From: Hyphochytrium catenoides
Taxonomy: Eukaryota > Protista > Hyphochytriomycota
Direction of reading: 5' to 3'
Assembly (NCBI GenBank): GCA_900088475.1
Contig: FLMG01000355.1
Coordinates: 1 to 64,000, forward strand
Length of the DNA: 64,000 nucleotides
Positions 26,855-52,879 of the stretch are shown piece after piece (within the stretch, counting starts at the first letter, position 1; each line of letters opens with the position of its first letter). Below the pieces are notes generated by a model that worked only from the letters and a program-made list of their open reading frames with translations, searched no databases and had not been told where the DNA came from. A program made the translations under genes and the position numbers.

Positions 26855-29800
26855 TCATCCGCCTCCTAGTATGGTATTCAAAATGCTGCCAAAGACTGGC
26901 CCTGCTAGTGCTTTGCAGAAGATGGTCACTGGCTCCTTGATGAATAGGTCAGCAGCCATTGAGATCAGAGAGGTTGTCAGCCAAGCGTCAGCTGTCCCCT
27001 CATCAAACTTCACCCCAAAGATAAGGTTGATGAAAAAGCAGAAGAGGATAACACCCAGAGCAACTGCCCATACAACCCCCAACAGGATTCGTCGGGTGAT
27101 ATTGTTCTGTCTCCAGTGGTTGAGTTCACGGAGACGCTGAGCCTGAAGCCTAGCATGGAACCCGCGATAGGCAGCTTGGACGCGCTTGACACAAATGACC
27201 ATATGAGGTGTGATTGGCCTACCATCCACCAGAACTCCCATCTTCAAGCATCTAGCAGCAATGGCCTGTTCCTTTGCCTTGCGGCTTTCAATGAAGTAGC
27301 GAGGGCTGTAACTCATAATCGCAAGCACCAAAGCATAGATCAGCAGCAGAATACCGACCACAATCAGGGCATTGGCCCATGGCAGTAGGATAGATATGAA
27401 AAAGTCAAGGAGTAGGTTGCCACAAGGATTGCCAATGCTTGACAAAGCACAGTTGGTCTGTTTGATGTAAAGCTCGTCTGGGATTTCGTCAAAGCCACAG
27501 CAAGAGAATGTGCGCTGCACAGTCGTGAATATCAGTGCGGCCTGGTGAGCGCCTTCAGGATCCTCAAGATTTTCCAGCATTTTGTTCCATTGTGTTGCAA
27601 GCACGTTGTATGCCTTATTTCGGTATGGCTCTTCATTGGCAACAAGGTGAACGACCGTCCCTGCCAGCATCATAGCGCCCACGAGAATGACTAGAGTAGA
27701 TGCAAAGACCCGGGTTTCCGCTGGCTTGCGCTTGTGAATTGCCGACAAGCCAAAGACGCTGAGTAACGTTCCTAGACCACCAGTGGCCCCTGGCACAAAT
27801 GCAATGGTGCTGCCAAATCCGTAACCCGACTCTGGGACTGCGGCCATATATATTGCAACACCAACCATTGACAGCCCTGCCAAAAACAACAGACAGGCAA
27901 CACCCATCAGGATTTGAGGTAGAAGGCTAAAGGGACGATAGGCCTCGCTGACGCCAACCATGGGAGACAAGTCTTCCTCAGCAACAATTGTCGTTCTAGG
28001 AAGAGGTGGGCCTTTGACTGAGCGCTCCCCTCGAGGTGAGAATGAGTAATCCTCATTCATATTTTCTAAGTGTTCGAGCAAGTTCTGGTCCGTCTTCGCC
28101 TTTGCCGGCTTCTCCGAGGGGCTCGAAGGACCCTGTGCAAGGTCGACAGGCGCTTGCGCATCCTCCGATGCTGGACTGACTGGCATCTTTGCATCACGAG
28201 CTTTTTGTTTGCCAAAAAGGACGTCGACAGTAGATTTGGCAGTGGCCTTGTCGTGCTTGCTGCCCAGTTCCTTGATTTGCATATCTTCGGCCTTCTTATG
28301 GTCAACATGCGGTCCAAGTAATTTTCTTTTAACCCTCTTTGAACCTCTTTGCAGATGCTCTTCGATAAAATCCAATGTGGTGGACTTAATTGGATTCTGA
28401 AGCTTCATGAAAGCCATTGGAATTCCAACCTCCACAGGAAGCATGATGCACATCGATATCAGAGATACCACCAAGGTCTTGGCAAAATTATCCTGTCGCT
28501 TGCCATAGAAAACTGCAGCCACAGTGAAGGAGATCATAACCGTTGCGCAGAAAACGGCAACCCGCTGAGGTCGGGAAAGGGTTACATGAGAGTGAGTTTG
28601 AGGCTTGAGAATACTGACCCACTTGCTCTCTTCCCTTAACACGCCTAGAATTTCGAACAGCATTCCCTTCGTATAACCATAGACTGCTGTTGCGTATCGG
28701 TGTGATTTGGATTCTCCGGCGGGGACGAGGCCAGTCTTGTCCATTTTGTCCTCATTGTCAAGCTCCTCGGCGTCTTCTTCTTCTGCTTTGTACATTCCCT
28801 CCTTGAGATATACGTTGGTCAAGTACTCATTGAGCTTCTCTTGGTCGGATTTATCCAGGAAGTAACCCATGACTCCTACGATAAGGAACCCTCCCAAGAC
28901 CGAGCACAGAATGATAAGCGGAAGGGGGTTGTTTTCATAGAGAACTAATAGCTTTGCATCTCCGATTGGGTCCACCTAGATCATAACAAAATGAGTACGG
29001 AGATTGCAGCTTAAACTCTGGAAGGCCCTGCCAGACCTTAGTCCCACCTGATTGATTTCGGGAAGCAAAGTATCCGCCGAAGAGCTGAAGTCCGTCAGAT
29101 GGGTTATCTCACAGTCCAAGTAGATTACAGCGTCCTCTAGTACTACTCCGCGTTGAAGTAGGCCGTCAGTGACCCAGACTTCTCGCTCCTTATCCCAGTA
29201 CCTGCAATCAGGAAACGTATCTGCAACGAAAAGGTTAGCAACATGGTTGCGGTTAGCAATAGTAGCACGCTCATCATCCAACCCCACCATTGGGAATATA
29301 CTTGACAGTGATACGCATTGAGATAGGCTTGGTCAGGTTTGCTACTGGTGCGATGCTGTTGGCATCCCCCTCTGATGCCGTGAACGAGAGTACGGCAGAA
29401 GACAGGCTCTGATTATTCTCGCTCCAGATGTAGGGGTTCGAGCTCCATTGGATAGCCTGTCAGTAACCAAGACATCAACCAGTTTGTCACCTATTGGGAG
29501 CTACGCACTGAGAAAGAGTTCATGCCTGCGCTTACCTTTACACTGAAAGAGGAGTTCTGACTAGAAGAACTGGACAGACCTTCAGGTAGCGTCAATCTGG
29601 GCCCATTGGGCACAACAAGGTCTGGTCAAGATTAAACTTTAGAGGAGGTGAAGAAAGTCGCGAACACCGAAGCTTGTAGGTGACTCTTACCTGTGGGGCC
29701 ACTAATGTCTGACCGCGCTGCTGCCAATGAGATCTTATCGCTGGAGAGGGTCACTGGTGTTTCTCCAGGTAGCGATTGCGACAACAAGAGGTCTCCAAAA

Positions 29801-32800
29801 CTGCTAATCAGACTGACCATAGTCTCACTGGCCGTCCGGACTGGATCACTTTCTGCAGCAGTTAGCCTTCGCTTCTTACCCGTGAGTTTTGCATTTTTTG
29901 CCTGCTCGGATGTGGCGGTGAAGACATTACTGACAGCCCCTAGAATGGTTGAGCCCGTGCTCGGATCTGGGACGTTTTTGATAGAGGTAGAAGAGACGAT
30001 GAGAGTTTCAACGAAGTCCAGCGCCTTATAGGAAGTCTCCGCATTAAGCTCCTGAGGAGATGACGTGATGGTGCGCAGAGAGACTGCTCCCTGCGCCAGA
30101 GCTTCCGGCGAGGGATCCTAATGACCCAACAAAAATGTTAGAAAGCTCTTCACAACTCGAATCAAACTAAGAGGCGCTCTTACGATATTGGCACTTGCGG
30201 TGATGACGGCGTCAAGGAGTTGAGACCTGATAGCCTTCCGAGCTTCCACTTCGGCCTCGGTAAGAGAGCAGTCTGCTCCACTCCAGCCCTTGTCACATGC
30301 ACAACTGTATTGGCATCCATTACTCACACTACACCCCTGTTCTCTCACGCAGACACCGTGATTGGAGCACTCCGGAATGGTGGGATCTGCATAGGCCATC
30401 GGTGTGCCTATTGTACAATCGCGTGAAACGCAAACAGGTGATTAGTGACATCCAACATCAGGCTCGATGGCTATCCCAATGAATTTACCTGCAGGATAAG
30501 GCGGACAGAGAGGAACCGGTGCTGGGCAGAGTGCAAGGTTGCACTCCCTGGTCTCAGTCATGGGTCCAAGGCGAGAGCAATCCTTTCCTCCTTTCGATGG
30601 TGCGGGATTGGTACAAGCCCGCTGTCTAGACTGCGTTCCAGGGAAGAACCCTCCCCTGTCTGAGGGGCAAGAGGAGGAACATTTGCTCCAGTCACTCCAC
30701 TTCGTGTAACCCCCATCTGCCATAAAGTGAGGATATGAGTTTTCAATCTAAGCGTCTTTGACGAAGGTCTTACCTATTTCTTTCTCGCAAAGTTCACTGT
30801 TGCAGAGTTGCGTCTCTTCCGCAGCTCCTGAGCAAGGGTTGCCACCTCCACTGGGGGGTGGATTGGTACAGGTCCTCCACCTCTTTCGGACACCGCCACC
30901 GCAACTAACGGAACAGGGTGACCATTCAGTCCAAACTGACCAGTTGCCGTCAATTACTGGTGGCTTTTCACACTTTTGACCAGAGTAACCGTTTTTGCAG
31001 TTGCAAACGCCCTGCTGGCAGGAGCCATACTGTCCGCAGTCTAGTCCTCTGCAGGGGTCAGCCAGAAGACTGCCCAGAATATTGACCACCGTCAGTACAG
31101 TGTCTGCGCCACTTGCTTTAGTTGATCCGAGAATGCTTGAAGCGTTGGCAGTAAGGAAGGAAGTAGTTAAGGAAGAGTTGGGACCTCCACCTCCCCCTTG
31201 TCCTGAGTCACTTTGCTGACCGAGACCAAGTGGAAGGACTGACACCAGTGCTCGTGACCCGTCGTGTAATGTATCACACCGAGTGCTAGCTCCCAAATTA
31301 TCCGCCACGTAGACTACAATTGTGTTCAAATGGTCCTTGCCTTGGCCCTGGGGTAGCATGGAGCTGTAGGATGGACTATCTCGGAAAGATGATATCAGGG
31401 CTACCTCCTGCGCAGTCGTTCCGTTATTAGCCATGGACATGTTGCCACGTGTGTACTTGTACCAGTAACTGAAGGGATAGTCCGCGGCGTCGTCTGTCCA
31501 TGAGCTAGAGACGGCGATGGTGAAAGTCGTCTGGAGCACGATGCCGGTGGTTGGCGTCACAATAATGAAGCCACTGGAAGGAGGAGCATTCATCACAATG
31601 GAGATTTTACCAACGCCATCTCCATTTAAGGTTGAGGCTGTTAGCGAGAATGTGTAGGTCGAGCCCGGGTTGAGACCATTAGGTCTAACGACTAGCTGAG
31701 AGCCCGTGATACTAGTGGAGCTGAGGCTAGCGATGCTAGTGGAGGTACCAAGTTCATCCTGCGGAATGAGAAATGCATCCGTGAGTAGGGTGACCAAGGA
31801 CCAGCTAATGCGGTAATGAAGCGTCGTAGAGTTCAATAAGAGGGATGGACAAGGGAGACTTAGGAGGACGCCTAAATATAGCAGCCCATTGAGTGGTGGC
31901 AAGAAGGACTGGAAGGCTAAGAAGGATGTCTTACAATGGACCAGAGAAGGGTATAGTCGGGCAATGTGGAGTTTACTGTGGCCAATAAGACAAGCCGTTT
32001 GGAGGGGTCGTGCTTTCTCGCTTGTACTTGAGAAAAAACCTGGACGACAGGTGGTTTGCCGTGTGTGAATGACAAGATGGTCTTAGCTGTAGCAGTTCTA
32101 TTGCCGATGATATTGTTCGAAGTGCTCTTGTTAAACTCCAATGCAACTTGGACCCTGGACGCTGGCGGGAACATTCCCGGCGGTATGTTAATCACCGAGC
32201 CATTGTTAGTCGTATACTGATTAATGTCGAGCGTCGCATTGGTCCCAGCTCTAAGACATGGTGCCTGTTGCCCGGTATTGGGTAGAGTTGCGCAGCTCCA
32301 TCGATAAGAAGTTTGAACACCGGCTTTGATGTCGTCGGGGTCTGACGACGCACTTCCGTCCAAGCGAATCCAATCATCGGACCCCGCAGTTCTATCGCCC
32401 CCTTTAATCCTGAACGGGTGGAAAGGCAAATGTTGATTAGGTACTTGACGACCAAAGCTTATTGGGCATGGTATCTTCGAATCTTTGCTGAGTCTTTCAA
32501 GCATCACAAAAGCGGCACTTCAAGGACCTTACCAAGCCACTAGGTCACTGGGCATGACTGTGATTTCCAAAGTGGCAGAATTATTCAATGACTCATTCTT
32601 GAACAGGCTCACCCAGCAGGTAAAACGGTACTGCTGGCCGGCATTCAGCAAATTTGGAGAGATCCGAAAGGATCTTGGATCTCTCATTATGCCACGACTG
32701 ACGTTTATCTGGTGGACATCTGTGGATTCCTGAATCCAGTTGAACTTCAGACCCGACGTGGAATCTGTACTATCATTCCCACATGAGAGCATGCTGGTTT

Positions 32801-35800
32801 CAACTCTTACAATGACATCTTCGCTACGCCGTATAGCCCTAACGTGATTGGTTAGAAATACGAATACGCTCACCGCTACAGCCAAACCTACACGAAGCAT
32901 TCTGTTGTTACCTACCTTGACGAAGCTCCAGCAATTTTAACGCTCGGAATGTTCTGCTCCGACTTTCTGAGCATTACCGCTGCTTGGCCTATTGTGGAGC
33001 TCAGGTAATTAGAGGCTGAAGCGGTGAAGTTGTAGGAAGACCCGCTATTGAGTAGTCGGCTTGGGACTCGCACAACCGCTGCCGTCGTATTTGTCAACAG
33101 GACCGCCAACTCTGCTGAGATGTTCTGTGCCAGTAAAGATGCGTTACTACAAAGAGAACACAATAGATCACTATCCCTATTGGCTCGTCACCTGTTCAGA
33201 GGATGCCACACTCCATGAGAACGCCATTTGCCTTCCTCCACTACCGCGAGACAGTGATGCATCCATAACAAGGTCCTCACAGGATCCGAGAGTGGATGGT
33301 GCTAGTAACACCACCTGCGGCAAAGGGGGGTTGAGGGGGGGCAGAACCGAGATGCATCCTGAGGATGATGCAATACTTCCGGTCACAGCCTTAAGGGCTC
33401 CAGTTCTTAAGGTAAGTGATCGACCAAGTGGGCAGGATGTGAGCAGGCCGCTGGACTTTGCCTGCATGTATGGCTGGATTGTTGCCTCAGAACCCAATCG
33501 TAGACTGATTGTGGTGGCGTTCTCCCAGAGACACTGGGCCCCGCTGCCCAGATAGGACACTGTGGAGGAGTCAAATGCTAGAGCACAGTCTACAAACCCA
33601 GTTTGTCCCGAAATTTTGAGGTCTGTCAATCCGCTGAAGCTGACAGCGATAGAGGCACCCGTGTCAGTGAAGCGAGCTAGGACCAAAGAGGGAGGTGGAA
33701 TTCTTCCCTGGAGGAGAACTAACCCTGACGCAGCTACCCCTGTTTTGCGTGATATGACCTCACCACGAACTACAAGTGGAGTCTTATCAGGTATCGAGGT
33801 GGTCGCGTATTGAGTGTTTCTAACTGTGATGTTTAGCGTGGTTTCGTTGAGCCAGGAACAAGACGATTCTCTCCCCAACAGCTCCCAAGTGGTCCCATCA
33901 AAGATTAGCTCTGGAGTGCAAGCACTTTGAAGAGTCTCAACGGGTTCGTCGAATGCCATCAGGATTGTGTTCGAGGTCTCTAGCAGTACCGCAGAGCGCA
34001 CAGTAGGGGCGTTGGGTGGCACGTACACGTGATTATGGATTGTACGCACTGGATCCGAACCAGATGCACGCCATCAAAGATTATGTATTAGTGGAGTCGG
34101 ATGGGAGGAAACAATATGATTTAGCATTTCCATCAGTAAAGCATCACGTGGTCTCCTTACCTTCAATGGATACTTGACTGAGGCTGTAGGCCCTATCGTC
34201 TGAGGACGTCACCAGTGTTATGATGGTGCTATGGTTGTTGACGGGAATACTGGCATCCTGCGGGACGATAGTCGCTGTGACCAGCCGTGAGATATTCCAA
34301 TTCTGTGATGTAAACACTATAGAGCTGATGTCAAGCACAACATCGCTGATGTTGCTACTTGTCAGCCGAAGCACAACGTCCGCCTGCGGTCGAGACCTCA
34401 GAGATAGCGTTAGCGAAGCGGTCATGCCTATATTCCCAATGGGGCGTTCAGCAACGCTAACAACCCTACTTGACACTGTGAGACCAGGCATATCCACCTC
34501 GGTAACTAGGAACGAAGTTGTAGGTAAACAACTGCCATTAGCCAGTACTGCAAGAATCCAATCGCTGTTCGTGCTCTGCAAGGTCCCAAAGAGGTTAAGG
34601 CAGCTCTGTTCCCCAGGACTTTGCCATAGACAATAGTCTGCAATGTAGCGAATGCAGCCTAGACCATCTTGATAGCTTCTGCACCGCTGAGTATTGCAAG
34701 GACTTCGTTGGTCGTCCCAGGGGAATGGACACCGTGTCTCTCTGTTGGTAAGCGAGAGTACTGCATTCAGCAGTTTCGTTTCAGCGTCCGGAAGACTGAT
34801 ATCAGATGTATTCCATCCTGACATGGAGAAGGGGTTCATCCAGTTGAACATTGAGATAGACGTTCTAGTTTCCGACTGCTTGCATGCTGTGCAGTCCGAA
34901 AAAAACGTGATATTTCTTGGAGCTGAGTCACCCCCGAAAGTGATTGTTGTTCCAACAACAGTGTCGTTCTCCCTTCGCAGCGTGAGTTCCCCCCATTCTC
35001 CGTCGATGTGGTTCTCCCACCGAGCGGTCGCGCTCCGCATGCCGTAATACGAGAAGTTATATACTGAGATGTTGCCCTCAGAGAACTTTCCGTACCCGTT
35101 AGAGATGAGCACCGAACCCATAGAGGTCTGCCAGACACGGTCGTCCATCCACCTAACCCACCCCGACTTAATGACATCCGGACATGTTGTGACACAGCGT
35201 TTACCGGTCCACTTAAAAGCAATTTCAGTTGCACTATGCTCAAGTCCAAAAGAGATAAGGATTTCTGTCCCATCCCAACTCCGGGAGACGGTAAACAAAC
35301 CTTTCATGGCGCTACTATCATCAACCCAAGTCCCTCCAGCCGTGGAGGGGCTTGAGTAGAGAATTGAGGCCAGGGTCATATTAAATATAGTGGATTTGGA
35401 CGAAGACTGTACAAGACCAAATTCACCGTGGATAGCCACATAGCTACCATTGCTGTCCGTCCAGACCCCGTGAAACCATAGACGGTCAGTCCAAAGAGAA
35501 GAGGGCAGAGATTTGCCAGGGCAGCTTGGAATATTGTAAAGGGGATTGTTGCTTGAAGTTGACAGGGCGACGATCGCCGTTCTCGCTTCGACTGCAGCAA
35601 AATCCCTACTGCCCGACACGGAGAAGTTTCTAGTTCGACTAGAGTTTTGGTCGAACACGATAATGGACGGGCTGATCGTGACATTGCTACCGCCACCGGT
35701 GTCCAAACTCTCCACCTTAAGGATAACAGGAGAGAGAGGATCGCCAACAAGACTTGCCGAGAATTGCAGAGTCTCATTTTCAGCGAGTGTGAGCTGATTA

Positions 35801-38800
35801 TTCCTTCCCAAAATATTACCCGACGCCAGCATGATCTCAACCCCAAATCGCCGCTGGAAGCGGAAGGAGATGGCGTTTGATGTTACTGGCCAACCAGAAG
35901 AGGTTGCCAATACTGTATCCATCAGCATTCCAGCGCTTGGGCGAGCTACTGGGCTTGGTGTTACATAGACGTACTGGATTGTCTGAGAAGGATCTGAGAA
36001 ATTATAGGTCAGACGGGCTGGGAAGACTTGGAAGTTACCGAGCGCGCTGCTGACAAAAACATTTAGAACTTCGTATGGAGCAACGAAATCCTTGGACCAT
36101 TGTACCCTTACGGTACCAACAGAACCGTTCAACAGTCCTCCATCCACAAAGTCCACGGGAATGAGCTCTATATCTGGCCGTATGCTCTCTCCTGTACCCA
36201 TCAAAAAGTGCGGGAGACAGGTTGGCCTTTGCGGTAGATATGGCCATGATATCCATGAGCGCACTACATCCGAATCACACGAGGATGGGCTGCTGGGTTG
36301 CATGTAACGACAATAGTCTCGGACATACTCTCCACACCAATCTAATGCTGCCTCAGATGGGACGCCCACATGACCACTCCAGAGTACTTCGCTTAATAAA
36401 GAAAGAACAGAGACAAGGAACGCGAGCGAACGAAAAGGTGTCGGTCAGAGCGGTCTGCCGTAGCATGGGTCCACTATGCTACATCTCATTTGTTTCACTC
36501 CTTCCGAATAAAAGCGCACTCACCTGCAGTTTCGGACGTGACAAGGGTTCATAGGATGAAGATCATCATGAAATAGACAGCTTCCTGGTGATAGGTGGGT
36601 ATGGAGCCACTCCAAAAGAGCAGAATGATTGTAGATGGCACGCTGGCCAATATGAGAATCATCACACGTCGGAAGGTCAGAGTACAGGGGAGACAAAGAC
36701 GATCGGGTTGTGATATTGAGTTGATTCCCCTTGTTCAGAGATTCCTTCGCAGCATCAGACAAACGTAACCATGGCGCCGACTTTCTCTCAGACGTCAAGA
36801 AAATTCCGTCCTCGGGCAAGATCTCGCCATCCATTGTCTGAGCTTTAATTCCATAGGTCGAGACCCACGTGACATTCACAGAAGCTTGCTCTTGAATGGT
36901 GTTTGACAAAGCAAACCTCAAGAGCATGGTCCTAAAAGAGAGGGCACCAGGCATGACCAATCAACACCAAACAGACCGTGAGAGATTATGAGCACTTGAG
37001 GAGAACAGGGTACGGCCATGATAAAACGATCTCAACGCAGCAGAGAGATATAACAACTAGGAAGAAGATCACGTTGCCCGATTCGAAGTTCAACTTACCA
37101 GGGCGATAAGCGCTTTGATGCAACCCGAAGACCTTTGTCGTTCGTGACTCTGGTCCTGACAGAGAACGAGCGGCTCCACGTCCTGCCAATAAGATTAAAG
37201 GATATCACCTGGTACTGGATAAAGTTCCCGTTTGTGGGTTCGGTAACAGTTGAAGTACGAAGATAAATCAGGGTAACAGCGCTGGCACTATAATCGAAGC
37301 TGATAGACCGTGAGAAATTTGCACAAGGTCCACTGCTTTCCATTGAAAGAGCACAAATGCCAATGGTTGCGTTCTGTGTCCCCGCTGTTGCCATGGCAAG
37401 GGAAGAAATGGACAGTGTGAACGGAAAGCCTGAAGGATGGAATTGATTGATAAAGGGAAAAACGAGCTCTCTTATCCCGCTATCTCCTTGCAGGATCAGT
37501 CCATCGACTGCAGCTGTTGCGGCATCAAATTTGTTCTCATCAACAACCATTAAAGTGAGCGGAGAGGCACATTGTCTAGGACCCAAGAGAAGAGCGGGCT
37601 CCTTTCCGAGAGTGTTTCTCATGTCTGCGAACAGATTTATACAGCCCAAGTCATCTGACTGAAGCCAGAGGCAGTACTCGATTATTTGCTGCACGCATTC
37701 ATGGTAACCATCAAGTGAGAAGCAAACAGGATTCCGGCATGGGGTAAGAGGATGTGCAGGGCTGAAAGGACAGCTATCCAAAAGTCGACCTATTCTTCCC
37801 AGTGAGAGAGTAAGGCTTGAGAGCGGNNNNNNNNNNNNNNNNNNNNNNNNNNAAGCCCCAGTCTTCATTGCTTCCGTCATAGGTCCATGGTGAATTGATG
37901 ACTGCAGGGCCTTCCCTTGTTACAGGCGCCTCCAAGTTGTAGCTGGCAATGGGTGGCGGTAGTAGCTCGAAGCCACATGAGGAACATAGGCTTGCCTGGA
38001 CGTCGCGTACTTCGAGAGCTGCTGTCTCAGCTGATGGGGTTTGGGCTGCCATCTTCAGTAAAAAGCCCACACCACTTTTTATTTTTTTAAGGGTTGCTTG
38101 AAGGTAGTGCTTGACACCTTCGGGGGCGGTATAGGTCACATTGCAATAGTACAGATTTGAGCTGTTTGCGTACACACGGCTAAAGGTGAGATCCTGACGC
38201 TGAGCCTTCACACTGTTTGCTGAAATTTCCAAGCGGCCCCATTCTGGTATAATCCAGACGCCTTCAAGCCATGAGGCCTGACCTAAATCGCTCTTGAGCT
38301 GGGGCAGTAGAGCCAAGCCACAAGTCTCGTTACCCATCTCCTCTGGAGTGCAAACACGTCTACCCTGTATGAAGATCTCCTTTCCGGCTTCTACTCCGTT
38401 AGTGAGAGCACCTTCAAATGAGTCCGTCCCGTCCGCCTGGAGTTCTATGATGCCGTTCGAACCAACAGGGAGGGTTTCCCCGCCGGAATAGTACCACTTC
38501 CCAAAGACGGTAGCATTCTTGCCATATAAGAGTGATCGAAGGACAATTCCCCTTGTGATATCGTTTTTCAACACGCCGAAGCTTCCATATATCTCCATGC
38601 GGCCCAGAGAGGTGTCCCATACGCCATCCAAGAAACCTCCCAGTCGTGAGAAGGCAGCTAAAGGTACTGCTGTGAAGTTATCATTGCCTAATCGTCTATC
38701 GGAGGGACAGGAGGACCAACGCAGGAAGGGATCAGAGCTATTAGACGACAATTGTATAGTTGTATTGTAGTCCATGAAGCTAGAGTTTGACGTGGCCATA

Positions 38801-41800
38801 CGCACTGTGAAAGCGGCCGTTCCTGCTCTCTCACCCACGTCGAGCCCAAATGAGCTCTGAGAGAGTATGATCCTCGGATCTGCAGAGTGCACATCCATCT
38901 TGAACAGTAGGGACTCGTTCATACGTCGCGGATAACGATACTGTATTTCTACCTCGGTGTGAGCCGATTCTGTGATCGCTGGAGTGACGGTACTCAATTG
39001 CAGGCCATAGGGATAGTAGATCGAGAAAGGAATACAGATTGGCGCTGTCGCATTGATTGCCGCGTCGTCTGATCTTGCTGTGAAACAAAGCTGCTCGTAC
39101 AGCAACGGTCTGAATATTTCAGGCTCTGCGGCAAGTGACACTGTGATAATTCCTACTGCCGTCCAGTTGCTATGTGAGAAGCTGACAGACGGGGCTGCTG
39201 TCAGGCTCGCCAACGTATGAAGAGATGAAACCTCGACCAAGACTGAGGCGTTTGGAGCTTGATTCAGCTTTACGAGGACATCATGAGTGCTGCCCCCCAG
39301 TTGCGAAGTATAAGATGGCAAAGATGCGTGGATAATGGAGAGAACGTTGTCCGACGTGCCAGAACTAGCAAGAGTGCTAATCGGAGGAATGCAGCGATAA
39401 TAATCTCTGAAAGTGGTCCACTTTGTCCATTCCAGAATTGAGGAATGGCCGCAAATTGGGGAGGAGAAGCCTATTGAACCATCGTAGAGACAAAGGTCTG
39501 TTGCATAGCCCTTACATTCTCCGCTCCCAGTCAGTAGGAGCCTATTGGAAGCAGCATCGTAGTGGTGCCTGAAATAGGTTTAGATAAGTCAGATGCAGGA
39601 ACCATTGACCATTCCAACCAGTAAGCAACCTACCGACATACTCCCACTTGGCACAGAAGAGAAAACTCCGGAACACTGCAATCTAATGAGAGATTCGCCG
39701 GTGAAGTGCTAGGATAGGTAAACCCCTCTGCATTGTAACAGCTTTGGAGTTCAGAGAACTCTGGTACTGTGCTGTTGGCCGTAAACTGCAGCTCCAAGTC
39801 CATCGGGAGCTCCTTTGAAACGTCAATGGCTTGCACCGTGAAGAGGATGGGACGGTTGAGTCGGACAACTATCTCCGACGTATTTGGGTTCATAGACTGA
39901 ACCTTGATGCTGGTACTGCTTGAAACATTTAGTTGAACCAGAACTTCCTGGGCTGTCGTTTTTTTTGGAAGAAGCATTGCTTGCAGGAAAGCCGTTCTAT
40001 GAACGCGAGGATACGAAAGAGTTAGCGAATCATTTGATACGAGGAATTTTTTGTAGCTTACCCGTCCGTGGTTAGAACTGCTTGCACTTTAAGCTTCTTT
40101 ATGTCGTCATCGATGAGCCGGAGTCGTACTTGTTGCCTCGAGGTTATGGTGAGGACATTATTGGAGTGGTCCACTCCATAAGCCTGTAGATAAAATTCTA
40201 ACATAGACACTGTTCTAGAATTGACAATGGAGTCTTTATAGGACCTCAGGAGCATGGGGACCGCAGCCGTAGCCTCCAGCTCACCCCGCAAATAGATTGC
40301 AGAGAGTCCCCCGGGCACACACAGTGCTTTTTGGGTCACAGCCGCGGTGCAGAGGTCATAGGAGAGCCTTGGATCTACAAATACGGGAATCAAGGTCACG
40401 TATACCTTTGTGACGTCCATTGCTAGCCACTCAGGTCCAACAGGCGCTAGAAATAGGTCCCGGTGACCCTCCACTATCTTCATGCCATCAATAGACGATA
40501 GATCGAAGACGTCCAAGGCGGCCTTAGGTGCAACTGGCTGGAATGGGTTGCAGCCAAGGATACCTGCGGTTGTCATAAAGGGATATGGGCACCCAAGTTC
40601 AGGCAAAGCTAGAGCAACATTAAGGCAACCTCCATCAGCTGGATTAAGGAACTGGCAGTAGCGGCGCACGTAATCGAGGCATTCACTCGAATCTTGAACG
40701 CACGCAGGGCTGTGGCAAGGCGATATCGCGGTCCAAGTATCAAAAGGGCACCCGCTGGTGCTACCGAGGGCNNNNNNNNNNNNNNTTGTGTTGGCAGGTC
40801 ATACCATATTTCTCCAGTGTCAGTACGAGTGTATTGCAGTACGGACTGGTTGGTGCTAGGTGAGGAAAGAAGGATTGAACCATGAGCCGCAGCCTGCTCG
40901 TCGTACCAAGACACCTTTGACGTCGTACTATTTAGTGGGACGACAGAGACAGGTATAGAGTGAATGACTCCAGATACGTTTCTAAGGAAAAATCCAATCC
41001 GGTCTCCAAGCTCTAGAGTACCCAAAGAGGTCTCCCAGATTCCGGTGATGGCTCTATTGGGTTGCTCCGTGTTACCACCAGCACATGAGCAACATCTGCT
41101 TCCATCGACGATACCGATGATGACATTTGGATCTGTGATTGCCATGGTAAAGCTATCGTGCTCTGCAGAGAAGTTCATAATGAACTCAGAAGAAATGGAT
41201 TCACCGACAACTCTAGTAATCGTCCCTGATAGTGTGGAGCTTCCGTTGTGAAGCAAAGTATGGAGCACATACTCCGATCCCAGAATTCCTACCAAGCGAG
41301 TGAGCTTCAGGTCACCCATAGTTGTGTTCCAATGGATGCATTTGAGCCATGTAGGATCTGTAAAGTCCTTATATTCCGGCCCCAGAATAAGAGAATCATC
41401 CTGCTTGGTTCCCATAATGCTCTGCAAAGGTTGCGAGGAGTCTAGGACAAAATGACCTGTCAGCAATGTTCCCTCCTGATTGGCCACCTCTAGCTCCATG
41501 TAAATCGGATCTAGCGCCTCGTTTGATGAACCCATACCGTAGACCTTTGATCCTTGTGGACTATATTCGATGGTGAGGATAGATCGATGGCTGTTCGAAA
41601 GCTCCAAGGTCGCAATGTTACCAAGGACCTGGAGAAGGCCGACCGTAGTAGACCATACGCCGCTCAACCACCCTCTTACTCCCTCGCTAATCGTTGGGAT
41701 AGCAGCAGTCCTGTTTGCTGTCGTTGGACCAGGACATGCGGGGACATTGTAGGACATATCACCACTTTTGGTTTCAAAGCTGAGGCTGATTTCCTTTAAA

Positions 41801-44800
41801 GCATCTACAGAATCCACTGGGAGCTCGACAACAAGTTCATTCTTACTCGCGTTCGAAGAGCCAAAAATGGTGATAGGTTGGTTATCCACAAAGACCCTTT
41901 GTCCTGCTATGTCCAACACCGGTATAATTGTCACCTCCATATCGACAAATCGACTAAAGTCGATGGAAGCTTTGGTGGTAAAGTGACCTGATTCATTTAA
42001 GCTGATTCTTGGAACGACTGAAGCCCCTCTTTTCCTTACTACCTGGAAATGCAAGGGCTGCGAAGTACGCCCGCTGCTGTAGAGCAAGTCAGCCGAATCT
42101 TGCACTTGTAGATATATCTCGTCTATTCGAAGAAGGTCCGGAGAAGGAAGAGTCCCTACCATGACTGTGACCGTCTTTGGAATACCCCAGTCACTCTCCG
42201 AAAAGCTCACGCTGCTGGGAACTGATTGCAGGATGTCAGACTTTGCTTTCACTTGTAACACGACTGTTCCGCGCGGTGGTTGGGGTAATTTGAGGCTAAC
42301 GTTAATGCTAGAGTCCTCAGGTATCGTTGTGAAGTCAAGGCCATACCCTGACGTTGAGCTAAAGGAGACGAGGAAATCTGGCGAGCTGATACTTCTCATC
42401 GCTACCGGTTCTAGACAAGCAATGAGGGTTGTGCTGAGCATGCTTTTCCACTTCTGTATTTGAGGGTCATGGCAGCCGACTTCGCCAGAAAATTGAGGAG
42501 AGGAGCAGAAGTTCACTACGAACTGTTCGCAAGAAGTTCCCCACTTCTCCGAATGTCTCTCTCGTGCTTGACTGTGGCATGGCTTGTAGGCGCAAGGTGA
42601 AGAGCCTGGCCCATTTGTTTGAAACGGGCATGTTCTGCCTCCTGGTCCCCAGCCAAAAAAGTTTCTATCCTTCCAGGTTGATCGCGCGTACGGTGGAGAC
42701 AATGAACATGATGTAAGGTTAAAGCTAGGATCCGAGCTCTCTAAAGCTATTGCCACTCTCCTGGTAGCATTGCCGCTATAAACCTTTACTCTGCGGGGTA
42801 GGTACCATGCTTCTGATGAGATCGACAACGCACTGGATAAAATTGGGCTTCCTGCTCCTTCAGGGATCTGTTCCAGACCGTAGTATAGCGTTGTTTTGCC
42901 TTTGGGCGGGACTAGAGCCCGAATCTCCAGCTCCAGCTCCTCGCTATGCTCTGTGGTGGGCACATGGACAACCCTGACTGGATATTGCTCCCGTATCCAG
43001 ACAAGGAAATGCAGGTCTGTCGTGTGGATGTTTAATGTAGGATCATCGCTAGCCACGTGGAAAGAAAGCGTCTCCAAGACCCAGGGCGCGGAGGGAGTCT
43101 CATCAAGCCCCATCACCTCGAGGGTCAGGAGCACGTTCTGGGACTGGTTGTATTGAGTCCACACAATTTGACTGTGATCACCCTTTAATTGAAGCCTACC
43201 AGTAGCAGAGGTCATGGTAGTCGAAATGGTGTATGTAGATCTAAGATGTAGGCTGAGTTTGATCGGAATTGCAGAGGCTGATGACAACACTCCGCCGTCC
43301 TCAAGCCCGTCAATCGTGAGCACTTCTGGAAGAGGCGGGAGAGTAAGTTGCAATGGCTCATAGCATGCATCGCCCTCTCTATAGGAAGGAATGAACTTCT
43401 CATCCTCACTTTCGCTATATCGTACTCCTTCCCAAGCGCAGGCTGGATCAATATTGGACCGACAGAAGCCCTCCAATAGTTCCTCACAAAAGGAGGAAGT
43501 GTAAAAATGTGTGCCATTGCCGCACAGGTTGAAGGTACAGGGATCAAAAGCGCTACTACCAGAAGTAGGACATGGGACAATAGTTCCTGCTTTCTCCGTT
43601 GAGCTTTCCCAATCAGTGCGATGCTCCCAAGCAGGACTTTCATCATTGGTGTTGTCAAGGATGGCCTGGCAAACCGTAGAGTTGAAGTTGATGCTGGAAA
43701 CATTATAGAGTGGATCCCCGCTAACTGCAAAAAAGTGAAGCTGGAGTTTGGGAGTCACTGATGCAAATGACAGAGACTCTAAATCAAACCTGACCTCTGA
43801 AGACCAGTTGTCAGGGGTTACTACGGTCGTGAAGAGTACCTCTTCCTCGCGAGGTCCTTCTCCTGCATCAAGAATAGTATCTTTCCAGTCTGGGGTTTGG
43901 GAGACGTAAAGATTCAGAGAGACTGACGTGCTGGGCATGACAGTAGGTCGAACTGATAGACTTCGCCTTTGGGTGATATTGTTCATCACAATGTTGGCAC
44001 GAAAGGGTATTCTTGGTCTACGAACCCGAAAGCGCACAATGCTGGAGCCGCTTGTCGTAGCACCGTTAGAAGGCGCTAGAGAGAGATTTAGGCCCCCAAA
44101 TGCGGGCCCGTTGAATACAATAGCGCTTGCGCTTTGGCTTGAGAAATGTATCCGAACCAGCTGGGTTCTGTTCCAGGTAGAGGATGTGAAATTGAGGCTC
44201 GATGAGCTCACACTTCCTAGTCCATTACCGAAAGGAGAGAGGGTGGCGCTGACCGCTGTAGTGCCAGCCAACTCGTGACGGAGTTTAACGCCTACAGAAA
44301 GGAAAGACCCTAACTCGACTGCCATACCATCGTAGGCGCCCTCTATGATGAAAGGATCGCTGCTAGAAGGTGAACCGTCCATTTTTATCATCCCACTTGA
44401 ACCTGTGAGATTAACGATAATGGGACTAAGGCAGCCTGGCTCAGACATCTGTTGTACTCGCCCAATAACAGCCTTGGTGGCATCTTGGGAACAGCTTGGA
44501 TGAGACGGATCGATATGACTGCAGAATCTTGCAATCTGAAGCATGCAAGGCAGGGATAGTCTAGAGCACCACCCCAGCGTGCCCGGCGGTAAGCACTCAT
44601 TCCGGCTGCAGATGCCAAGTAGGCAAGGGTTGTTCGAAGACATAGCGCTCTGAGTATTTGAAATGGGACACTGCTCAGAAGAAGAGCCAGCAGTTGGCGG
44701 TTCAGGCCATGCAGTAGGACAGGAAGATAGGATAGGAGCGGAGGAGTCACTTTCATGCATTGAAAATACCACCTCGCCAGGTGTAGAAATTGAAGCGTTA

Positions 44801-47800
44801 GTTGAGTCAGCCAAAGCAGAGCGGCGCAGAGCAATCGTAACAGAAGCCTGAGAGTGGTCCTCAAAGCGAAGAGTGGCAGTCCTGGCAGTGCTGCTTTCAG
44901 TCATGAGTCCCCCTCCGCTTAAGAAATGTTCCATATCTAACAGTAACGAGAGCGAGGTGTCCAACCGTACTGAGACAGGATATACCGGTTGATATGCTAG
45001 AGCCAAGGTTAAGAGTACGTCCTCTTTCCACGGCGAGCTTAGAAGTCTCCTCTTGATGGAAGGCTGCGTACTATCGCGAATATAGTATGTCCGCTGAAGG
45101 GTTCTTTCTACGGTTCCGTCCATAGACACGGCTCTTATTAGTAAGCTGTCTAGATAGATGGGCCGCTGCTCTAATCCATTGTCTCGGCATCCAAAGTGGA
45201 CTTCAACGGGCTGAGACCAGTTGTTAGAGGAGAAAGTAATCGGAAAGTTCACGTGCGGGAAGACTAATAAGCCGTAGAAAGGCGATACATGCAGCTGCCA
45301 TCCTCCGGCCATCGAAAGAGGCTCCGCAAATTGTATCATCATGGTGTAGAGACTGCCCTCCTTTAGTGTGCTGCCATCCATGGGCATGTCAACCACCAGA
45401 GGATATGAATGCAAGCTGTCTAGCGAAGGTGATGGCGTTAGCCAGACTGCGTCGTGGAACTCTTCCCTAAGTTCATAACAAGTACTGCTATTCTCAGTCG
45501 CAGTGATTTGACATTGATGCCGCAAGTCCTCTGCGGGACATGTGGCTCCGTGGATTAGCAACCTAGGGACCCCAAGCGCAGGTTCAGCTTCGTATGTGAC
45601 CTGTCGGTAAGCAGTGGGACCGTAAATCAGTTAAAGCAACAAAACATTACGCCTGGGACACACCTGCAGATACGAAACAGCCGATTTCGTTGTCGCTTCA
45701 TTCGTCTCCAAAGGTTTTCTAAAAGTAGCTTCATCTGTGAGGTAGGTCACTGAGAAGTTCTTATACATAGCTGGGTTGTCAGCCGTAATACTGTAGTCTA
45801 AAGGACGTAGAAACTCTCTGGAGAGCGAGACTTGCACCAGATGTGTCTCTAAGGACCCGTTCGTAGTTAGTTGCGGTGCGCTCCCTTCAAATCTGACTGC
45901 CTGAACTTCAAATGGTGGAAGGGTAGTGTGGCCGCGGAAAAGTGCCACAAGGTTAGACCTACTTTGATTGAACAAGGCATCCTTTGACTGTGCCTGGAAG
46001 AAAACTCCATCCACAAAAACATTCTGTCGCCAGTCGCTTTCTTCGAAGGGCTGTTCTCTTGCCGTCCTATAGACCAACAATCCGTACTGCAATTCACTCC
46101 AATTCTGAGGACTAAATATGAACACTTGCTGACTTTCCGTATCCATTGCAAAGGTACCAGCTAAGCTTGTGAACACGACTTCAACAACTTCGGTTGGCGC
46201 GTAAAGTAGATGCACCTGAAAGGCGATGGTGTGGTTAACTAAAGCTGTCTGGGGGTTACTCGTCGTTTGAGTAGAGAAAGAAGTATGCAGTAGTGCCTGC
46301 CCCTCCGAGCTCTCATACGAAAGCGGTGTCTCACAAATTCCGGTCGGGGCATCAACATCGCGGTCCGCGAGATACTGCCTACATGCCTCTGATTGAGCTA
46401 TTGGAGCTGAGTAGGTACAGTACATTTTTATGAAAAGGGAACAGTCTCCTGAGCCGAAGTTCTCAATGCAAGGCTTGTGCACACATGGAGAGAATGGACT
46501 TGAGTCCATGTAGAACGGACATTTGCTTTCAACCCCTGTCCTGTCTTCGCCGTACGTAGGATGACTCTTGGGCCGTGATTTCAACATAGGGCAGGGGTAA
46601 GAGTGCCCCCCAGCATCGTGGTACGAAAAGGCCAACTGGTTCCTATTCCTAATGCTGTCACCGAGATCGTCAAAGCGCCACATTCTAGTCAAGCTGAGGA
46701 CACGTTCTATATGCCAATTGTCCGAGGTGAAGGTTAAACTAGAAGAAAGCACTCTCGCACCCACTTCTTCCATCAGAACTTGAAACTCAGAGGTGATGTT
46801 AACAGTGGCGGTTCCTGATGGCGCCCTCCGCAACTGGACTCCGATCATAGTGGTAGCTCCAGTCGAAGATATAACTCTTGCACTGACGAAAGATGACGAC
46901 GAGTCACGTATCCGGAGTGGAAGCACTGTCTCCTCTACCATAAGGTCGTCTGTCATGTCGTGAACACTTATGGTTGCTACCGACCAGGTCTCCGCTAGCG
47001 ATGAAGCCGTTGAAGCGCTGCTGGGAAGTGGGATTGTGACTAAAGCTTCAAATAGACTATTCCTCCGCGGCATTATTAGGGTTGCTTGCAAGTTGACATC
47101 ATGTGAAAAGGCAACCCAAGCCTGGAGGTGTCTAGCTGCGAGGTCCTTATTCCCGTCTTCGTCATTGAACGTTGGAACGCAATAGATGCTATCTTCATAG
47201 GTGCCCTGGACATGCAGGTTGACGCCTAAACCGCCCAAGAGCAACACCTCCTCTGTTCCCTCAAGAAGGACTGAGGTAGTCATCTCTCCTTCTGCTGTGC
47301 TAACCGCGGCTGCAGAGACTTTAATTTCTTTGGACGATGGCTGCATGGAGAAATGGGAATAGTCAGAGAAGAATGTAGGGCGTCAAGGAGAGAAGTCTAA
47401 TCACCTTCCACAGCCAGACTCCTAGCGGTCTTGTGGAATCTGCGACGGAGGCATTCCATGTACAGGATTGGGTTTGCAGTCCGCATCTGGAGAAATAGTA
47501 AGAGCCACTTGCGAAACCAAGGTCATCACTTTGCGAACTGTTGATGACCGGTGTTGGTGGGCTCTGCGGCCAACAATTAGTCTCCAGAAAAGGAGACATC
47601 GGCCCTTCCCAGTGCAATGGAACCAAGAGCTCTTGGTCCCCCAACTGGTAGCCAGCTTGCAGTCTTTTGACGACAGGATTATAGTCCATGGCTCTGGTCT
47701 TCACAAACCTAACAGGAAGAACAGCAGAAATAAGAACAAAAGGGACATGGGAAATTTTGAACAGGATGAGAGAGAGGAGAAAGGGACTCTGAGATAGTTG

Positions 47801-48418
47801 AAACTACTCATCATCTTGGGCTTACTCTTGATGCATGTTTTTCTTAGTTCCAATTAGAACTCCAGCCCCAGGAGTCACCAAAAAGTTCTTGACTGTTAAA
47901 GGCTGTGTGATAGACTGCCCTTCCCCTTGCGAGTCACACTGGTAAGCGTGCAGCAGCTGGATGTTTATATAAACCTCCATAGGATATTGACTCTTGAAGA
48001 GAACATTGCAAGTCAAAGAATCTGATTCTAGAGTAGAGTTCACAGGAGATACTGCGTGCTCCAACAATGTTGGCCCTGCCCACTGATGAGCGTCAAAGAG
48101 GCGGAGCTGCCTGGCAGACTTTAGGGCTTCAACAGCAGCCGCTTTCGGTCGTGTGCGAAACCACACACCTTTCTCGTTTGGATTGCCCAAGAAGATGTCC
48201 GTCACGCTGCTTGAGATCTCATAGATTAGGTCCAGATCGTAATCGTAGTGAGGGACCCCATCAATGCAGCGTGATATTCTTGTCCAGTCATGAAGATTTG
48301 GCTGGCAAACCTCGGAAGCTTGAACAAGTTGAACATTCCGCGGTGCCAACAGCAGTAAACAACAACTGTACAAGGCCAAAAGGGCCACAAGGCTTCTTGG
48401 ATTGTCATGGGACACCAT
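26855..48418 (-). CDS. Giant polycystin-1/REJ-GAIN-like cell-surface protein (~6,500-6,800 aa): signal peptide, Calx-beta-like repeats with Cys-rich inserts, REJ, EGF, 2xTSP1, EGF, GAIN/GPS, 5 PKD1-like TMs with an embedded tetraspanin and IQ motif
   Basis: Contiguous minus-strand ORFs joined by GT-AG introns and two N-gaps. Signal-like [25 protein letters not shown]; REJ ([36 protein letters not shown]...[12 protein letters not shown]); TSP1 ([20 protein letters not shown]); GPS (CRYWD....W...G...[10 protein letters not shown]); TMs ([10 protein letters not shown]...AVFYG; [14 protein letters not shown]...DLFIKEP). An alternative in-frame ATG lies at 48523. Confidence 0.85.
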
Positions 48419-49549
48419 CTTAGGACTAGGTAGGGGATACCACCTGCTGATCTGATAAGGCAGTTTACAGGCGGATGATGGCGAAGACCTAGTGTGTTCT
48501 TCACCTACTGTAGTCCATTTCATTTCACTTCTTGGGTCTTAGCCTCTAGCCCAAGCCCGTCTACGATGGTGATTAGTCTCAGAGCATGACTTCTGTGAAC
48601 GTCCCACCGAGCGACCCAACAGCGTACTCCAACCAGATTGGAGGGAAATGAACTTTAGTGAACTTTATAGCATCTCCTCAGAGCTTAAGTGTTCCTTGGT
48701 ACTGAGGTAATTTGTGTGAGGGCTGGAAAATGTGTTCATCAGGCTTTTAGGGGTCAGGATACCACGAAAAATCGAATGAGATGCAGCGGCACTTTACGTA
48801 GGTCTAATCGGGAAATAGTGGAGCATCAGCATCAAGAATCCACTAGGACGCGCGGATCAACAAACGACGAGAAGTGTTTGGCCTGTGATGAAGAATTGTG
48901 GGAGAAGGAGTATGAATATGTTGGGTATGTCACTACGAGACGGCAGGGGTTTAGAGCTGGACGGCATAATTAGTAGGCCAAACGAAGCAAGGTAAATGAG
49001 AGGCTTCCTCTACAGTAAAAGACAAAGAGACCATTCAGCAGTAGTAATAAGCAACAAGAGGTCGAAGCAGGAGAAAGAGAAGGGCGGGTTGTGGGCATGA
49101 AGGGGCGCTGTGCGTCGGTGGATGAGTTCGACAGCAGACAGGAAGGCGGGCGGGTGCCTCCGAGCCTCCAGAACACTGGAGATCTTTCCGCTTGACCTTT
49201 CAGCTTTATGCGCGGAAACGGCTGATGGTGGGGGGTCGAGACAGTGATTTAGCTAGAGTACTGTTAGCTGTTGTAGTAGTTGGTGGAGAATACGGTTGTA
49301 CATACATGGCCGACTGTACTTGCTCTATTTCAAGTCAAAGTAGACAGCAGACAACAGTCATTCGGTTGGCGACGGGGGGAAGCGGTGGGCGATTGTTGTT
49401 GTTGTTATCTAGCAGCTCTTCTTCCAGCAAGAAGCAGCATCCCTATGATGGACGAAGCACGTCAAAAGAATCTTCGTCTACGCAGCAGTATAATACAGTA
49501 GTAGCAAGTACTGTCGGCAACCCCACCACCAACATGAACAACGAACTGG

Positions 49550-51194: not shown

Positions 51195-52879
51195 ATGGTC
51201 AAGAGCAAAAAGGAAAGTGGCCCTAGTGGTCGAAGCAACGTTGAGGAGACGTCCATATTGTCTAAAAGTACCATTAAGAACGTGGCAGCCCAGGCAGTAT
51301 TTCTAGGGACCGGTGTGCTCTCGACGTGCCTTAACCAGACTCTATTTTACCACGGTGCGGCTGGTAAGTAAAACTACGAATCCCGTTCAGAGGCGAGTTG
51401 GCTCACTCAGCGCCACGGTTTCCTATATTTGGGTCCTCAAGACCATTGGAGTATGCTGCTTCCGCTTGGAAATTATATTGGGATGACCCTGGTGGGGCTC
51501 GTGCCGATAGGATTTTCTGAGGGCCCAGCTACTAAGAGAGATAATACTCCGAGAGCCCTCAAGCCGCATCCCGGTGAGGATGGACCAATTCTTACCCTAG
51601 GTGAGAGAGGCCAAATGAGGTAGGGCAATCCCATAGTTGCCATCACACATTGGCCCGTCCTTTGCTTAAAACATCCATCTTGACCGCACTAGGCAGCGCC
51701 CCGACCATCATGTACACCTCCAGTCAAAAGAATCTTTAGGAAAAGCCGGCAATACAGAAGCTGATGGTGGTGTAGGCCAGGTTGGTCCTCATGGAACAGC
51801 CCGATCATGGCCATTGTCTCGGCTTGTCGCGTTTACGGTGGTGCTAGACTTTGCAGGTATCATTTTTACATTCTTAGCGTTCTTTTTAGTGGGACCGAGC
51901 ATTCACCTCCTGAGTTGAATTTTGTAGGAGCCATCTTTTGCATGTTTGGACTGACTATGGCGGGCAGTGGCCTGTACCAGGGTAAGAAAGCCCCAGCAGC
52001 GAAAGAGAGCAACTCCTTTTCGATTAACTCTGTCCCTCAGTTCTGTACTCTTCAGTAGTCTGCTGGTCAGCATTTCTTTCCAAAGCAGTCCTCCGAAAGT
52101 ATGTCAGCAAGGTAAGAGGGTTTCCTTCGCGCTAAAAAATATGACACCCTCAACAACACCTTATTCCATTTTAGGAGGAATGGTATGGGATCTTTATAGT
52201 GACGGTGGGGCTCGCCATTAGCGCACTCGGGCAGAACATATCGGGAGGTCAGTCATCATATATAACTATTCCGTTGCTATCATGAGTGTTCATCTCCTCT
52301 GGATTGTCACTTCTAGGCAAGGGCTATGTGGTCATGCTGGGTGTCCTAAACACACTGATGGGGGCCGCCTGCTACGCTGGAACATATGTTACCGGTGAAC
52401 TCATGATGCAGAAACCGGAAAAGCCGTCGCCCCACAGTCTGTGTGTCAGAGTGGGGCTTAGCTGTACCATTGTCCTTCTAGTCTATATGGTTGCCTACAC
52501 CATCCCCAGATGGAAGGAGCTCGTGACAGATAACATCATCGCGCATAATGGGGATGTTAGGGTCATTGCCTGGGCCTTTATCTGGCTCATCATCTCGCAA
52601 CTAGCTCATGCCCTAACCTACTTCATGCTCTTGGGTTCAGTAGGAGCTGTTACCACTGGGATACTACAAAGCCTACGCGCAGTGTGCGTCTTTGCATTCA
52701 GTTCTCTACTCTTTTGTTCGGTTCAAGACTCGCAGTGCTACACAACTACCCGCGGCTTTGCTACCTTAGTGGTAGTCTGTGGAGTTATCTATTACTCGAA
52801 GAGTAAGGCCAAATGCCGAGCCCCCCTCACCTCTTTGCCACTAAAGACTCCTGCAGAGTTAGAGCCACTCAAAGCATGA
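51195..52879 (+). CDS. Drug/metabolite transporter (DMT) superfamily membrane protein, SLC35F/nucleotide-sugar-transporter-like, multi-exon
   Basis: Multiple hydrophobic helices: AVFLGTGVLSTCLNQTLFYHGA, MLLPLGNYIGMTLVGL, FGLTMAGSGLYQ, TYFMLLGSVGAVTTGILQSLRAVCVFAFSSLLFC..QDSQC. Confidence 0.75.

Follow-up and report, generated by a model that had tools for sequence, protein, structure and literature searches.

Can the half of polycystin-1 (PC1) that holds five transmembrane (TM) segments serve as a receptor apart from the channel-like half, and, if so, through what might it signal? The question is raised by a gene of about 21.6 kb on the minus strand of contig FLMG01000355.1 of Hyphochytrium catenoides (assembly GCA_900088475.1), of which positions 1 to 64,000 were analysed (the window, 64,000 nucleotides in all). 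PC1 is a major human disease protein whose sensing and signalling are debated, especially for the 5-TM half taken apart from the channel-like half. The gene described here isolates that 5-TM half and joins it to a REJ-GAIN ectodomain, a tetraspanin and an IQ-like helix. We put at roughly three in four the probability that the locus is a single intact gene whose product is a giant surface receptor of the polycystin-1 family, with nine TM segments and a type-I start, representing a protist subfamily that has the N-terminal membrane half only.

The membrane core and its built-in tetraspanin

The gene and its membrane part comprise the following features.

26855..48523, minus strand: whole gene, 22 exons, about 6,629 amino acids (aa), two assembly gaps inside
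28853..28924, minus strand: TM1, from hydropathy, helix 18-59 of an AlphaFold2 (AF2) model and a VIA match to PC1
28400..28573, minus strand: TM2-TM3 hairpin, from AF2 helices 135-157 and 164-192 and the VIA alignment
27284..27940, minus strand: tetraspanin (PF00335), four TM segments; its large extracellular loop contains CCG (27494-27502)
27107..27208, minus strand: IQ-like helix that runs into TM4, AF2 helix 590-623
26867..27103, minus strand: TM4-TM5 hairpin, GVKF...W...S...D...P, from profile A5 and VIA
26855..26857, minus strand: stop codon TGA, three residues beyond the last helix

The last exon, a continuous frame of 706 codons, was modelled with AF2 from an alignment of 27 relatives, giving a mean predicted local distance difference test score (pLDDT) of 75, with helices at 85-95. 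An exhaustive VIA search of this model against 48,161 representative PDB chains placed polycystin-1 from the PC1/PC2 complex (8z6b_A) at the top, three Z units ahead of the next rows (Z 15.6, root-mean-square deviation 4.8, 192 residues aligned, 20% identity). The alignment pairs model residues 1-687 with PC1 3064-3610, which corresponds to TM1 to TM5. A profile built on the C-terminal IQ and two-TM region of 33 family members (A5) matches TM4-5 of PC1 with E 0.0027, the relative P0128 aligns with the same PC1 segment, and a pedinophyte relative aligns both with that segment and with the PLAT domain of PC1. The TM2-TM3 hairpin carries a family motif, (L/F)(S/T)RPQR, in which R135 and R138 are invariant in alignment A1. 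Single-sequence search of the PDB with the last exon gave no match, and PC1 was recovered neither by profile A1, which retrieved tetraspanins, nor by Foldseek. Taken together, the comparisons of sequence and of predicted structure establish that the 5-TM core is homologous to TM1-TM5 of PC1. The original prediction of a polycystin-1-like receptor is borne out by this match to PC1 and by the presence of REJ and GAIN/GPS in the ectodomain.

The same prediction held that PLAT and the whole TRP-like unit are missing, and this too stands. The cytoplasmic loop between TM1 and TM2 is about 95 aa long and contains only helices and disorder in the AF2 model; it has no Pfam match to PLAT even at E 10, and close relatives likewise have no PLAT at this position. 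PKD_channel (PF08016) has no match in the gene, in the downstream open reading frames (ORFs) or in the relatives examined. Neither a TOP domain nor a 6-TM TRP-like unit was found after TM5, the stop falling three residues past that helix, and relatives terminate 3-70 aa beyond the same aligned position.

The loop between TM3 and TM4 holds a tetraspanin that is embedded in the continuous last exon and is not free-standing. Residues 346-564 of this exon score 46.2 bits against PF00335 (cut-off 32.1, E 5.6e-12), covering positions 4-223 of the 225 in the profile. The four helices lie at residues 352-379, 388-415, 418-447 and 518-555 of the AF2 model, and C492, C493, G494 and C518 are invariant in alignment A1. 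Profile A1 finds CD81 (8.8e-9), CD53, TSPAN15 and CD9 in the PDB; the top eight Foldseek matches of the last-exon model are tetraspanins, all at probability 1.0, and the fold matches from Foldseek and VIA include CD53, CD9, CD81, uroplakin, PRPH2 and TSPAN15. A CD81 cluster of the ESM Atlas also matches, with a TM-score of 0.50. A tetraspanin in the tail of the receptor, as first proposed, is therefore supported by its Pfam score, its CCG motif and its PDB and fold matches.

The earlier call of an IQ motif fared less well. Its pattern, [ILV]QxxxRGxxx[RK], is present on the helix before TM4, but the score lies under the Pfam cut-off. In relatives the same alignment column scores 20.5 (P0005), 26.2 (P0128) and 16.7 bits (P0001), and the helix itself has weak matches in the PDB, all of them to IQ peptides. 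Hydropathy and the AF2 model give a self-consistent topology that places the loops, the IQ helix and the start of the tetraspanin together on the cytoplasmic side.

The mosaic ectodomain

Outside the membrane core, the following features were placed.

48317..48418, minus strand: signal-peptide-like N-terminus, read by eye from the sequence
34165..46542, minus strand: ectodomain repeat region, with eight 7-Cys modules of about 70 aa each
46521, 44670, 43572, 42630, 40750, 37772, 36579 and 34731, minus strand: starts of the 7-Cys modules, from alignment and hidden Markov model (HMM)
41700-40790, 38600-37900 and 35560-34900, minus strand: W..G(V/I)W modules, from sequence motif
31276..32744, minus strand: REJ (PF02010) in three exons, E 1.7e-3, 7.8e-13 and 5.8e-25
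30970..31053, minus strand: EGF-like module 1, six-Cys pattern CRGLDCGQ...GQKC, read from the sequence
30787..30942, minus strand: TSP1 repeat 1, PF00090, E 6.3e-15
30526..30699, minus strand: TSP1 repeat 2, PF00090 at E 7.9e-5 and PF19028 at E 1.6e-8
30268..30369, minus strand: EGF-like module 2, PF07974 (EGF_2), E 2.4e-4
29048..30264, minus strand: GAIN domain in five exons, from the matches of relatives and the family profile
29087-29206, minus strand: GPS, CEITHL|TDF, PF01825, E 2.7e-3

The membrane-proximal part of the ectodomain is well anchored in known families. The REJ matches span positions 16-406 of the 452 in the PF02010 profile, and relatives show EGF_2 or EGF_Teneurin at the position corresponding to EGF-like module 1. 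The spliced region from GAIN to TM1 matches relatives with E 4.6e-38 to 1e-11, and a profile of the relatives' GAIN region (A4) matches solved GAIN domains over both subdomains (ADGRG6 1e-13, ADGRL3 5.9e-12, ADGRF1 and ADGRG1). A conserved stalk, ..DPIGDA.., follows the GPS. The GPS is of a two-Cys type, 'C..W......W..(D/E)GLL', which resembles that of human PC1. With REJ, GAIN/GPS and TM1-5 present and neither PLAT nor a channel found, the gene is filed as a member of a 5-TM, tetraspanin-bearing subfamily and not as a polycystin-1 orthologue.

The first 4,500 aa or so are of a different kind and have no Pfam match, even at E 10; searching eight pieces of the repeat region at that threshold returned noise only (Evasin, DUF4097 and ApeC, 0.04-0.4). 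Self-BLASTP of the modelled protein likewise detected no internal repeats at E 1e-3, and the repeats were revealed only through the Cys pattern, alignment and HMM. The 7-Cys module follows the pattern CP[F]x6-9PCx4C...C...C...C...C, and seven aligned copies share nine invariant columns (C8, P9, P18, C19, C24, C36, C44, C52 and C77; alignment A3). The eighth copy, outside the training set, was recovered by the HMM with an independent E-value of 3.7e-6. Each module is trailed by beta-rich segments with a 'FTxxNW' motif. The HMM found no 7-Cys module in the fetched relatives. An ESM Atlas feature search with 691 aa of the repeat region gave scores of at most 0.79, which are not usable, and an AF2 fold of one ectodomain unit from an alignment of the seven internal copies reached a pLDDT of only 51.5. 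Between some of the Cys modules lies a second repeated module, W..G(V/I)W.T..G...(I/L), in about six copies that each end in CxxC; one piece of this region has a weak match to ApeC (apextrin C-terminal) at E 0.044.

Gene integrity, rival explanations and neighbouring genes

Does all of this belong to one working gene? Open segments between stops run along the minus strand from 48538 to 26858, the longest having 1,673 codons, in DNA of even composition at about 49% GC. They were joined by dynamic programming on codon usage and splice signals, with manual fixes at three junctions. The predicted introns are short (about 52-181 nt) with GT-AG ends, and at five sites two long segments in the same frame are parted by a single stop that falls in a short intron with CAG|GT...AG ends. 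The resulting coding sequence of about 19.9 kb has no in-frame stop, and splice paths that continue beyond the terminal TGA score below those that end there. Its first in-frame ATG is at 48523; the original prediction had taken the one at 48418. The analysis confirms a gene of about 21.6 kb with the domain order first described, from a signal-peptide-like start and repeats through REJ, EGF-TSP1-TSP1-EGF, GAIN/GPS and TM1 to TM2-3, tetraspanin, an IQ-like motif and the last two TM segments; that it yields a single transcript remains a prediction.

The two assembly gaps were checked by comparing three DNA runs (X1, X2 and X3, from two samples) with positions 36500-42000 of the window.

40772..40785: gap 1, 14 N within the coding region, with no bridging contig in X1, X2 or X3
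37827..37852: gap 2, 26 N inside coding sequence, true content 145 letters

Gap 2 can be closed without breaking the frame. Each of the three runs has one contig that spans it, identically in the two samples, and the apparent shift from frame 1 to frame 2 across it is cancelled because (145-26) mod 3 = 2, so that both flanks share one frame. Gap 1 is coding-like on both sides: the 30 letters to either side are open in the frames of the gene only (...PTQ|ICDRCYYKSL and AALLSLTRRF|), and the flanks carry the CxxC and 'LSLT' motifs that are seen flanking other Cys modules. The contigs end there in loose ends of 98 and 93 letters on the two sides, and gap 1 must therefore be longer than 14 letters. 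The loose ends at the gap 1 flanks (40771/40786) partly resemble each other's reverse complements, GCGATAAGAGAGCTGC vs CAAGCTCTTATAATAGC; an inverted repeat or a haplotype branch at this point may explain why three assemblies break here.

Sample differences speak to the modelled frame directly. In these 5.5 kb, X2 and the window disagree at 25 positions, which the gene model sorts into 18 synonymous, 5 non-synonymous and 2 intronic, and the 10-nt insertion of X2 lies within a predicted intron. The excess of synonymous changes and the intronic position of the indel indicate that the modelled frame is under purifying selection to either side of each gap. X2 and X3 come from one sample of 2011 and depart from the window at about 0.5% of sites, X1 (2017) at only 5 sites, so that two strains or haplotypes of the source organism have been sequenced.

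Several points weigh against reading the locus as one intact polycystin-1-type receptor. The single 20-kb transcript and all splice junctions are predicted, no contig crosses gap 1, and either gap could conceal an intron or a stop. Nothing in the fetched relatives corresponds to the N-terminal Cys-module region, so that homology does not tie it to the same gene. Z scores of helical bundles are generally inflated; the GPS match to PF01825 reaches 18.6 bits against a cut-off of 22.5, and the IQ-like motif reaches 12.6 bits against PF00612 (E 0.12) where 20.3 are called for. Finally, localisation, cleavage and the binding of calmodulin or other partners are predictions.

These points leave room for other explanations, one of which is the fusion of two neighbours by the gene model. 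A secreted or anchored repeat protein (48.5 to ~34.1 kb) would then be followed by a separate REJ-GPS-tetraspanin receptor (~34.0 to 26.9 kb), which is consistent with the restriction of the Cys modules to this gene among the fetched sequences and with the size of most relatives, 2,000-3,000 aa, like that of the downstream part; the longest predicted intron (181 nt, 34160-33980) also lies exactly at the proposed boundary. Those same 181 nt are all that separates the two parts, however, which share a strand and are joined in frame by GT-AG ends. The downstream part is extracellular, yet it has no starting Met and signal peptide of its own, and relatives of 4,000-6,500 aa are known (P0015, P0034, P0261 and P0128). 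We regard two genes as unlikely. A single gene is the most economical reading, given the short distances between the coding parts, the frame kept across them and the lack of a second signal peptide, and a single transcript is predicted accordingly.

That the locus is no working receptor but a pseudogene in decay, or a chimera that arose by mis-assembly at the gaps, is suggested by the two gaps in the coding region, the first of them without a bridge in any run. The absence of in-frame stops, the identical closure of gap 2 with its frame restored, the coding-like sequence with expected module motifs that reaches gap 1 from either side, and the 18:5 ratio of synonymous to non-synonymous changes flanking both gaps make decay or chimerism very improbable. 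A hidden channel has its own appeal, since the four tetraspanin helices and TM4-5 form a 4+2 set after TM3 that resembles S1-S4 plus S5-S6 and might work like the voltage sensor and pore of a TRP/PKD subunit; alternatively, channel exons might lie downstream, where minus-strand ORFs occur at 24865-23023. The last two helices align with TM4-5 of PC1 and not with a pore, the loop connecting them has about 10 residues and no pore helix, and the preceding four are a true tetraspanin by sequence and fold; on these grounds the 4+2 arrangement was rejected. The downstream ORFs lack Pfam matches, splicing past the stop is disfavoured as described above, and relatives, including those derived from transcripts, end at the same point. 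A channel in either form is barely credible, and the intact channel-less receptor is retained as the preferred reading.

Elsewhere in the window, a two-exon DUF885 gene lies at 3105-4979 on the plus strand (Pfam E 8.7e-130), with best relatives in Chlorokybus (55%) and Gonapodya (49%), followed by hundreds of bacterial proteins at 44-50%; it may be an old bacterial acquisition. An ORF at 53935-54939 (minus strand) has a weak match to the Cep57 centrosome-localisation domain (E 1e-4), and one at 52286-52879 (plus strand) has a weak match to the EamA transporter family (E 3e-3).

Relatives, proposed mechanism and comparison with known systems

Is the architecture a singular event? The last exon, searched against 1.84 billion representatives, returned 129 matches, and the membrane part shares 21-40% identity with protist relatives. 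Closest of all, at 40% identity, is an ORF of 695 aa found on a 5.9-kb contig from a public run. Just upstream of this homologue, at positions 1269-1741 of the contig (L001, run SRR28521203), lie small ORFs that probably represent the GPS exons of an orthologue or paralogue in a related organism. Full-length relatives with REJ, EGF, TSP1, GPS and tetraspanin occur in Bicosoecida sp. CB-2014, in Cantina marsupialis and in metagenomes. REJ, TSP1 and tetraspanin are found together on single mRNAs in a Bicosoecida MMETSP transcript and in several Cantina marsupialis Trinity transcripts (EukProt). The two Bicosoecida sp. CB-2014 entries, A0A7S1C6T6 and A0A7S1C4Z5, bear the UniRef name 'PKD/REJ-like domain-containing protein'. 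The REJ-TSP1-GPS-tetraspanin layout is thus a gene family and not a one-off, as it was already present in database entries for these two organisms. The original prediction did not recognise the combination as described, which holds for the literature searched but not for the databases: a full-text search found no paper on a REJ/GPS receptor with a tetraspanin, while the layout already sits in the entries just named, unnamed or automatically named. The published account of oomycete PKDRR covers stramenopile PKD2-type channels only (PMC7399828).

The insert between TM3 and TM4 varies among relatives. The Bicosoecida and Cantina proteins carry four additional TM segments in it. So do ten of 12 further metagenome or Logan relatives that were checked, where the segments fall between TM3 and IQ; four of these ten have CCG, and one passes the Pfam Tetraspanin threshold as well. 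In the relatives P0013, P0015, P0007 and P0034 the loop contains four TM segments set close together, but it lacks CCG, a long extracellular loop and a Pfam tetraspanin match, and it may hold a degenerate tetraspanin or a different 4-TM insert. A shorter hypothetical protein of Cafeteria roenbergensis (KAA0171508.1) has only the TM2-3 and IQ/TM4-5 modules in common with the gene, and its TM3-TM4 loop has no TM segments, PLAT or RhoGAP. Pedinophyceae sp. CAG9463240.1 carries PLAT in the loop and is without the tetraspanin, and one metagenomic member carries a RhoGAP domain there.

Known functions of these domain families suggest how such a receptor might operate, with predicted autoproteolysis, calmodulin binding and a tetraspanin role in trafficking, clustering or recruitment. 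The GAIN domain would cut itself in the endoplasmic reticulum at its HL|T motif, and the huge N-terminal fragment would remain attached, sensing adhesion to prey, substrate or partner cells or the force that they exert. Tension or a bound ligand might then shift or free this fragment and expose the ..DPIGDA.. stalk to the 5-TM core, and a calmodulin-like protein on the IQ helix adjoining TM4 could read the change inside the cell. The built-in tetraspanin could act as an in-plane readout through trafficking, clustering or partner recruitment, much as free tetraspanins do with CD19, ADAM10 and uroplakins. Ions, if they flow at all, would have to pass through PKD2-type channels encoded by other genes. 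Autocleavage, and signalling that uses calmodulin and membrane microdomains in place of a pore, both first proposed from the sequence, are thus something that we infer only. The receptor family, which is found in several heterotrophic stramenopiles, is probably a main surface-sensing system of these little-studied flagellates.

A broader reading, possible though doubtful, is that the 5-TM half of PC1 is an autonomous ancient module whose TM3-TM4 loop is a slot for effectors, and that the fusion acts as a 'Rosetta stone' predicting tetraspanin partners for PC1-type receptors. The effectors in the slot would be a tetraspanin in the source genome, bicosoecids and Cantina, PLAT in the pedinophyte and RhoGAP in the metagenomic member. 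Were this true, polycystin-1-type receptors would generally rely on a tetraspanin to traffic, to cluster or to shed vesicles. Such a partnership would fit a report that human PC1 and TSPAN4 colocalise on migrasomes and retraction fibres (PMC10487028). The covalent arrangement of PC1 core and tetraspanin also suggests seeking a PC1-tetraspanin link in animals. The gene offers a testable model of pore-independent output for a PC1-type receptor and is, among the literature searched, the first case of a complete tetraspanin embedded within another multi-pass receptor.

Set beside known systems, the gene is closest to the polycystin-1 family (human PKD1, PKD1L1-3 and PKDREJ; C. elegans LOV-1; sea-urchin suREJ3), with which it has in common REJ, a GAIN/GPS with HL|T beside TM1 and the 5-TM core. 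It differs in having no PLAT, TOP/polycystin domain, TM6-11 channel-like unit or C-terminal coiled coil, and in carrying a tetraspanin and an IQ-like helix in the TM3-TM4 loop. Its ectodomain has TSP1, EGF and novel Cys modules where that family has PKD-Ig repeats, leucine-rich repeats or C-lectin. The protist relatives share its order, REJ-EGF-TSP1-GAIN/GPS-TM1-TM2/3-[insert]-IQ-TM4/5-end, but are without the eight Cys modules, and the TM3-TM4 insert differs in some of them. A pore-free REJ receptor has a precedent in sea-urchin suREJ1 and suREJ2, which have no polycystin channel half, so REJ ectodomains can work without a pore of their own; these proteins span the membrane once or twice and are not known to carry a 5-TM core, a tetraspanin or an IQ motif. 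Adhesion G-protein-coupled receptors (GPCRs) such as ADGRL3 and ADGRG6 have the same long mosaic ectodomain, GAIN autoproteolysis motif and stalk before TM1, but the membrane part of the gene is PC1 TM1-5 plus a tetraspanin fold and not a secretin-like 7TM unit; 7tm_2 has no Pfam match, and the GPCR rows in Foldseek have probabilities below 0.4. Tetraspanins (CD81, CD9, CD53, TSPAN15, uroplakins and PRPH2/ROM1) have the same four TM segments, small and large extracellular loops, CCG and further conserved Cys. Free tetraspanins are proteins of 200-350 aa, whereas the copy described here sits in the cytoplasmic loop of another membrane protein, and by this embedding the usual non-covalent partner of a tetraspanin is replaced by a covalent one.

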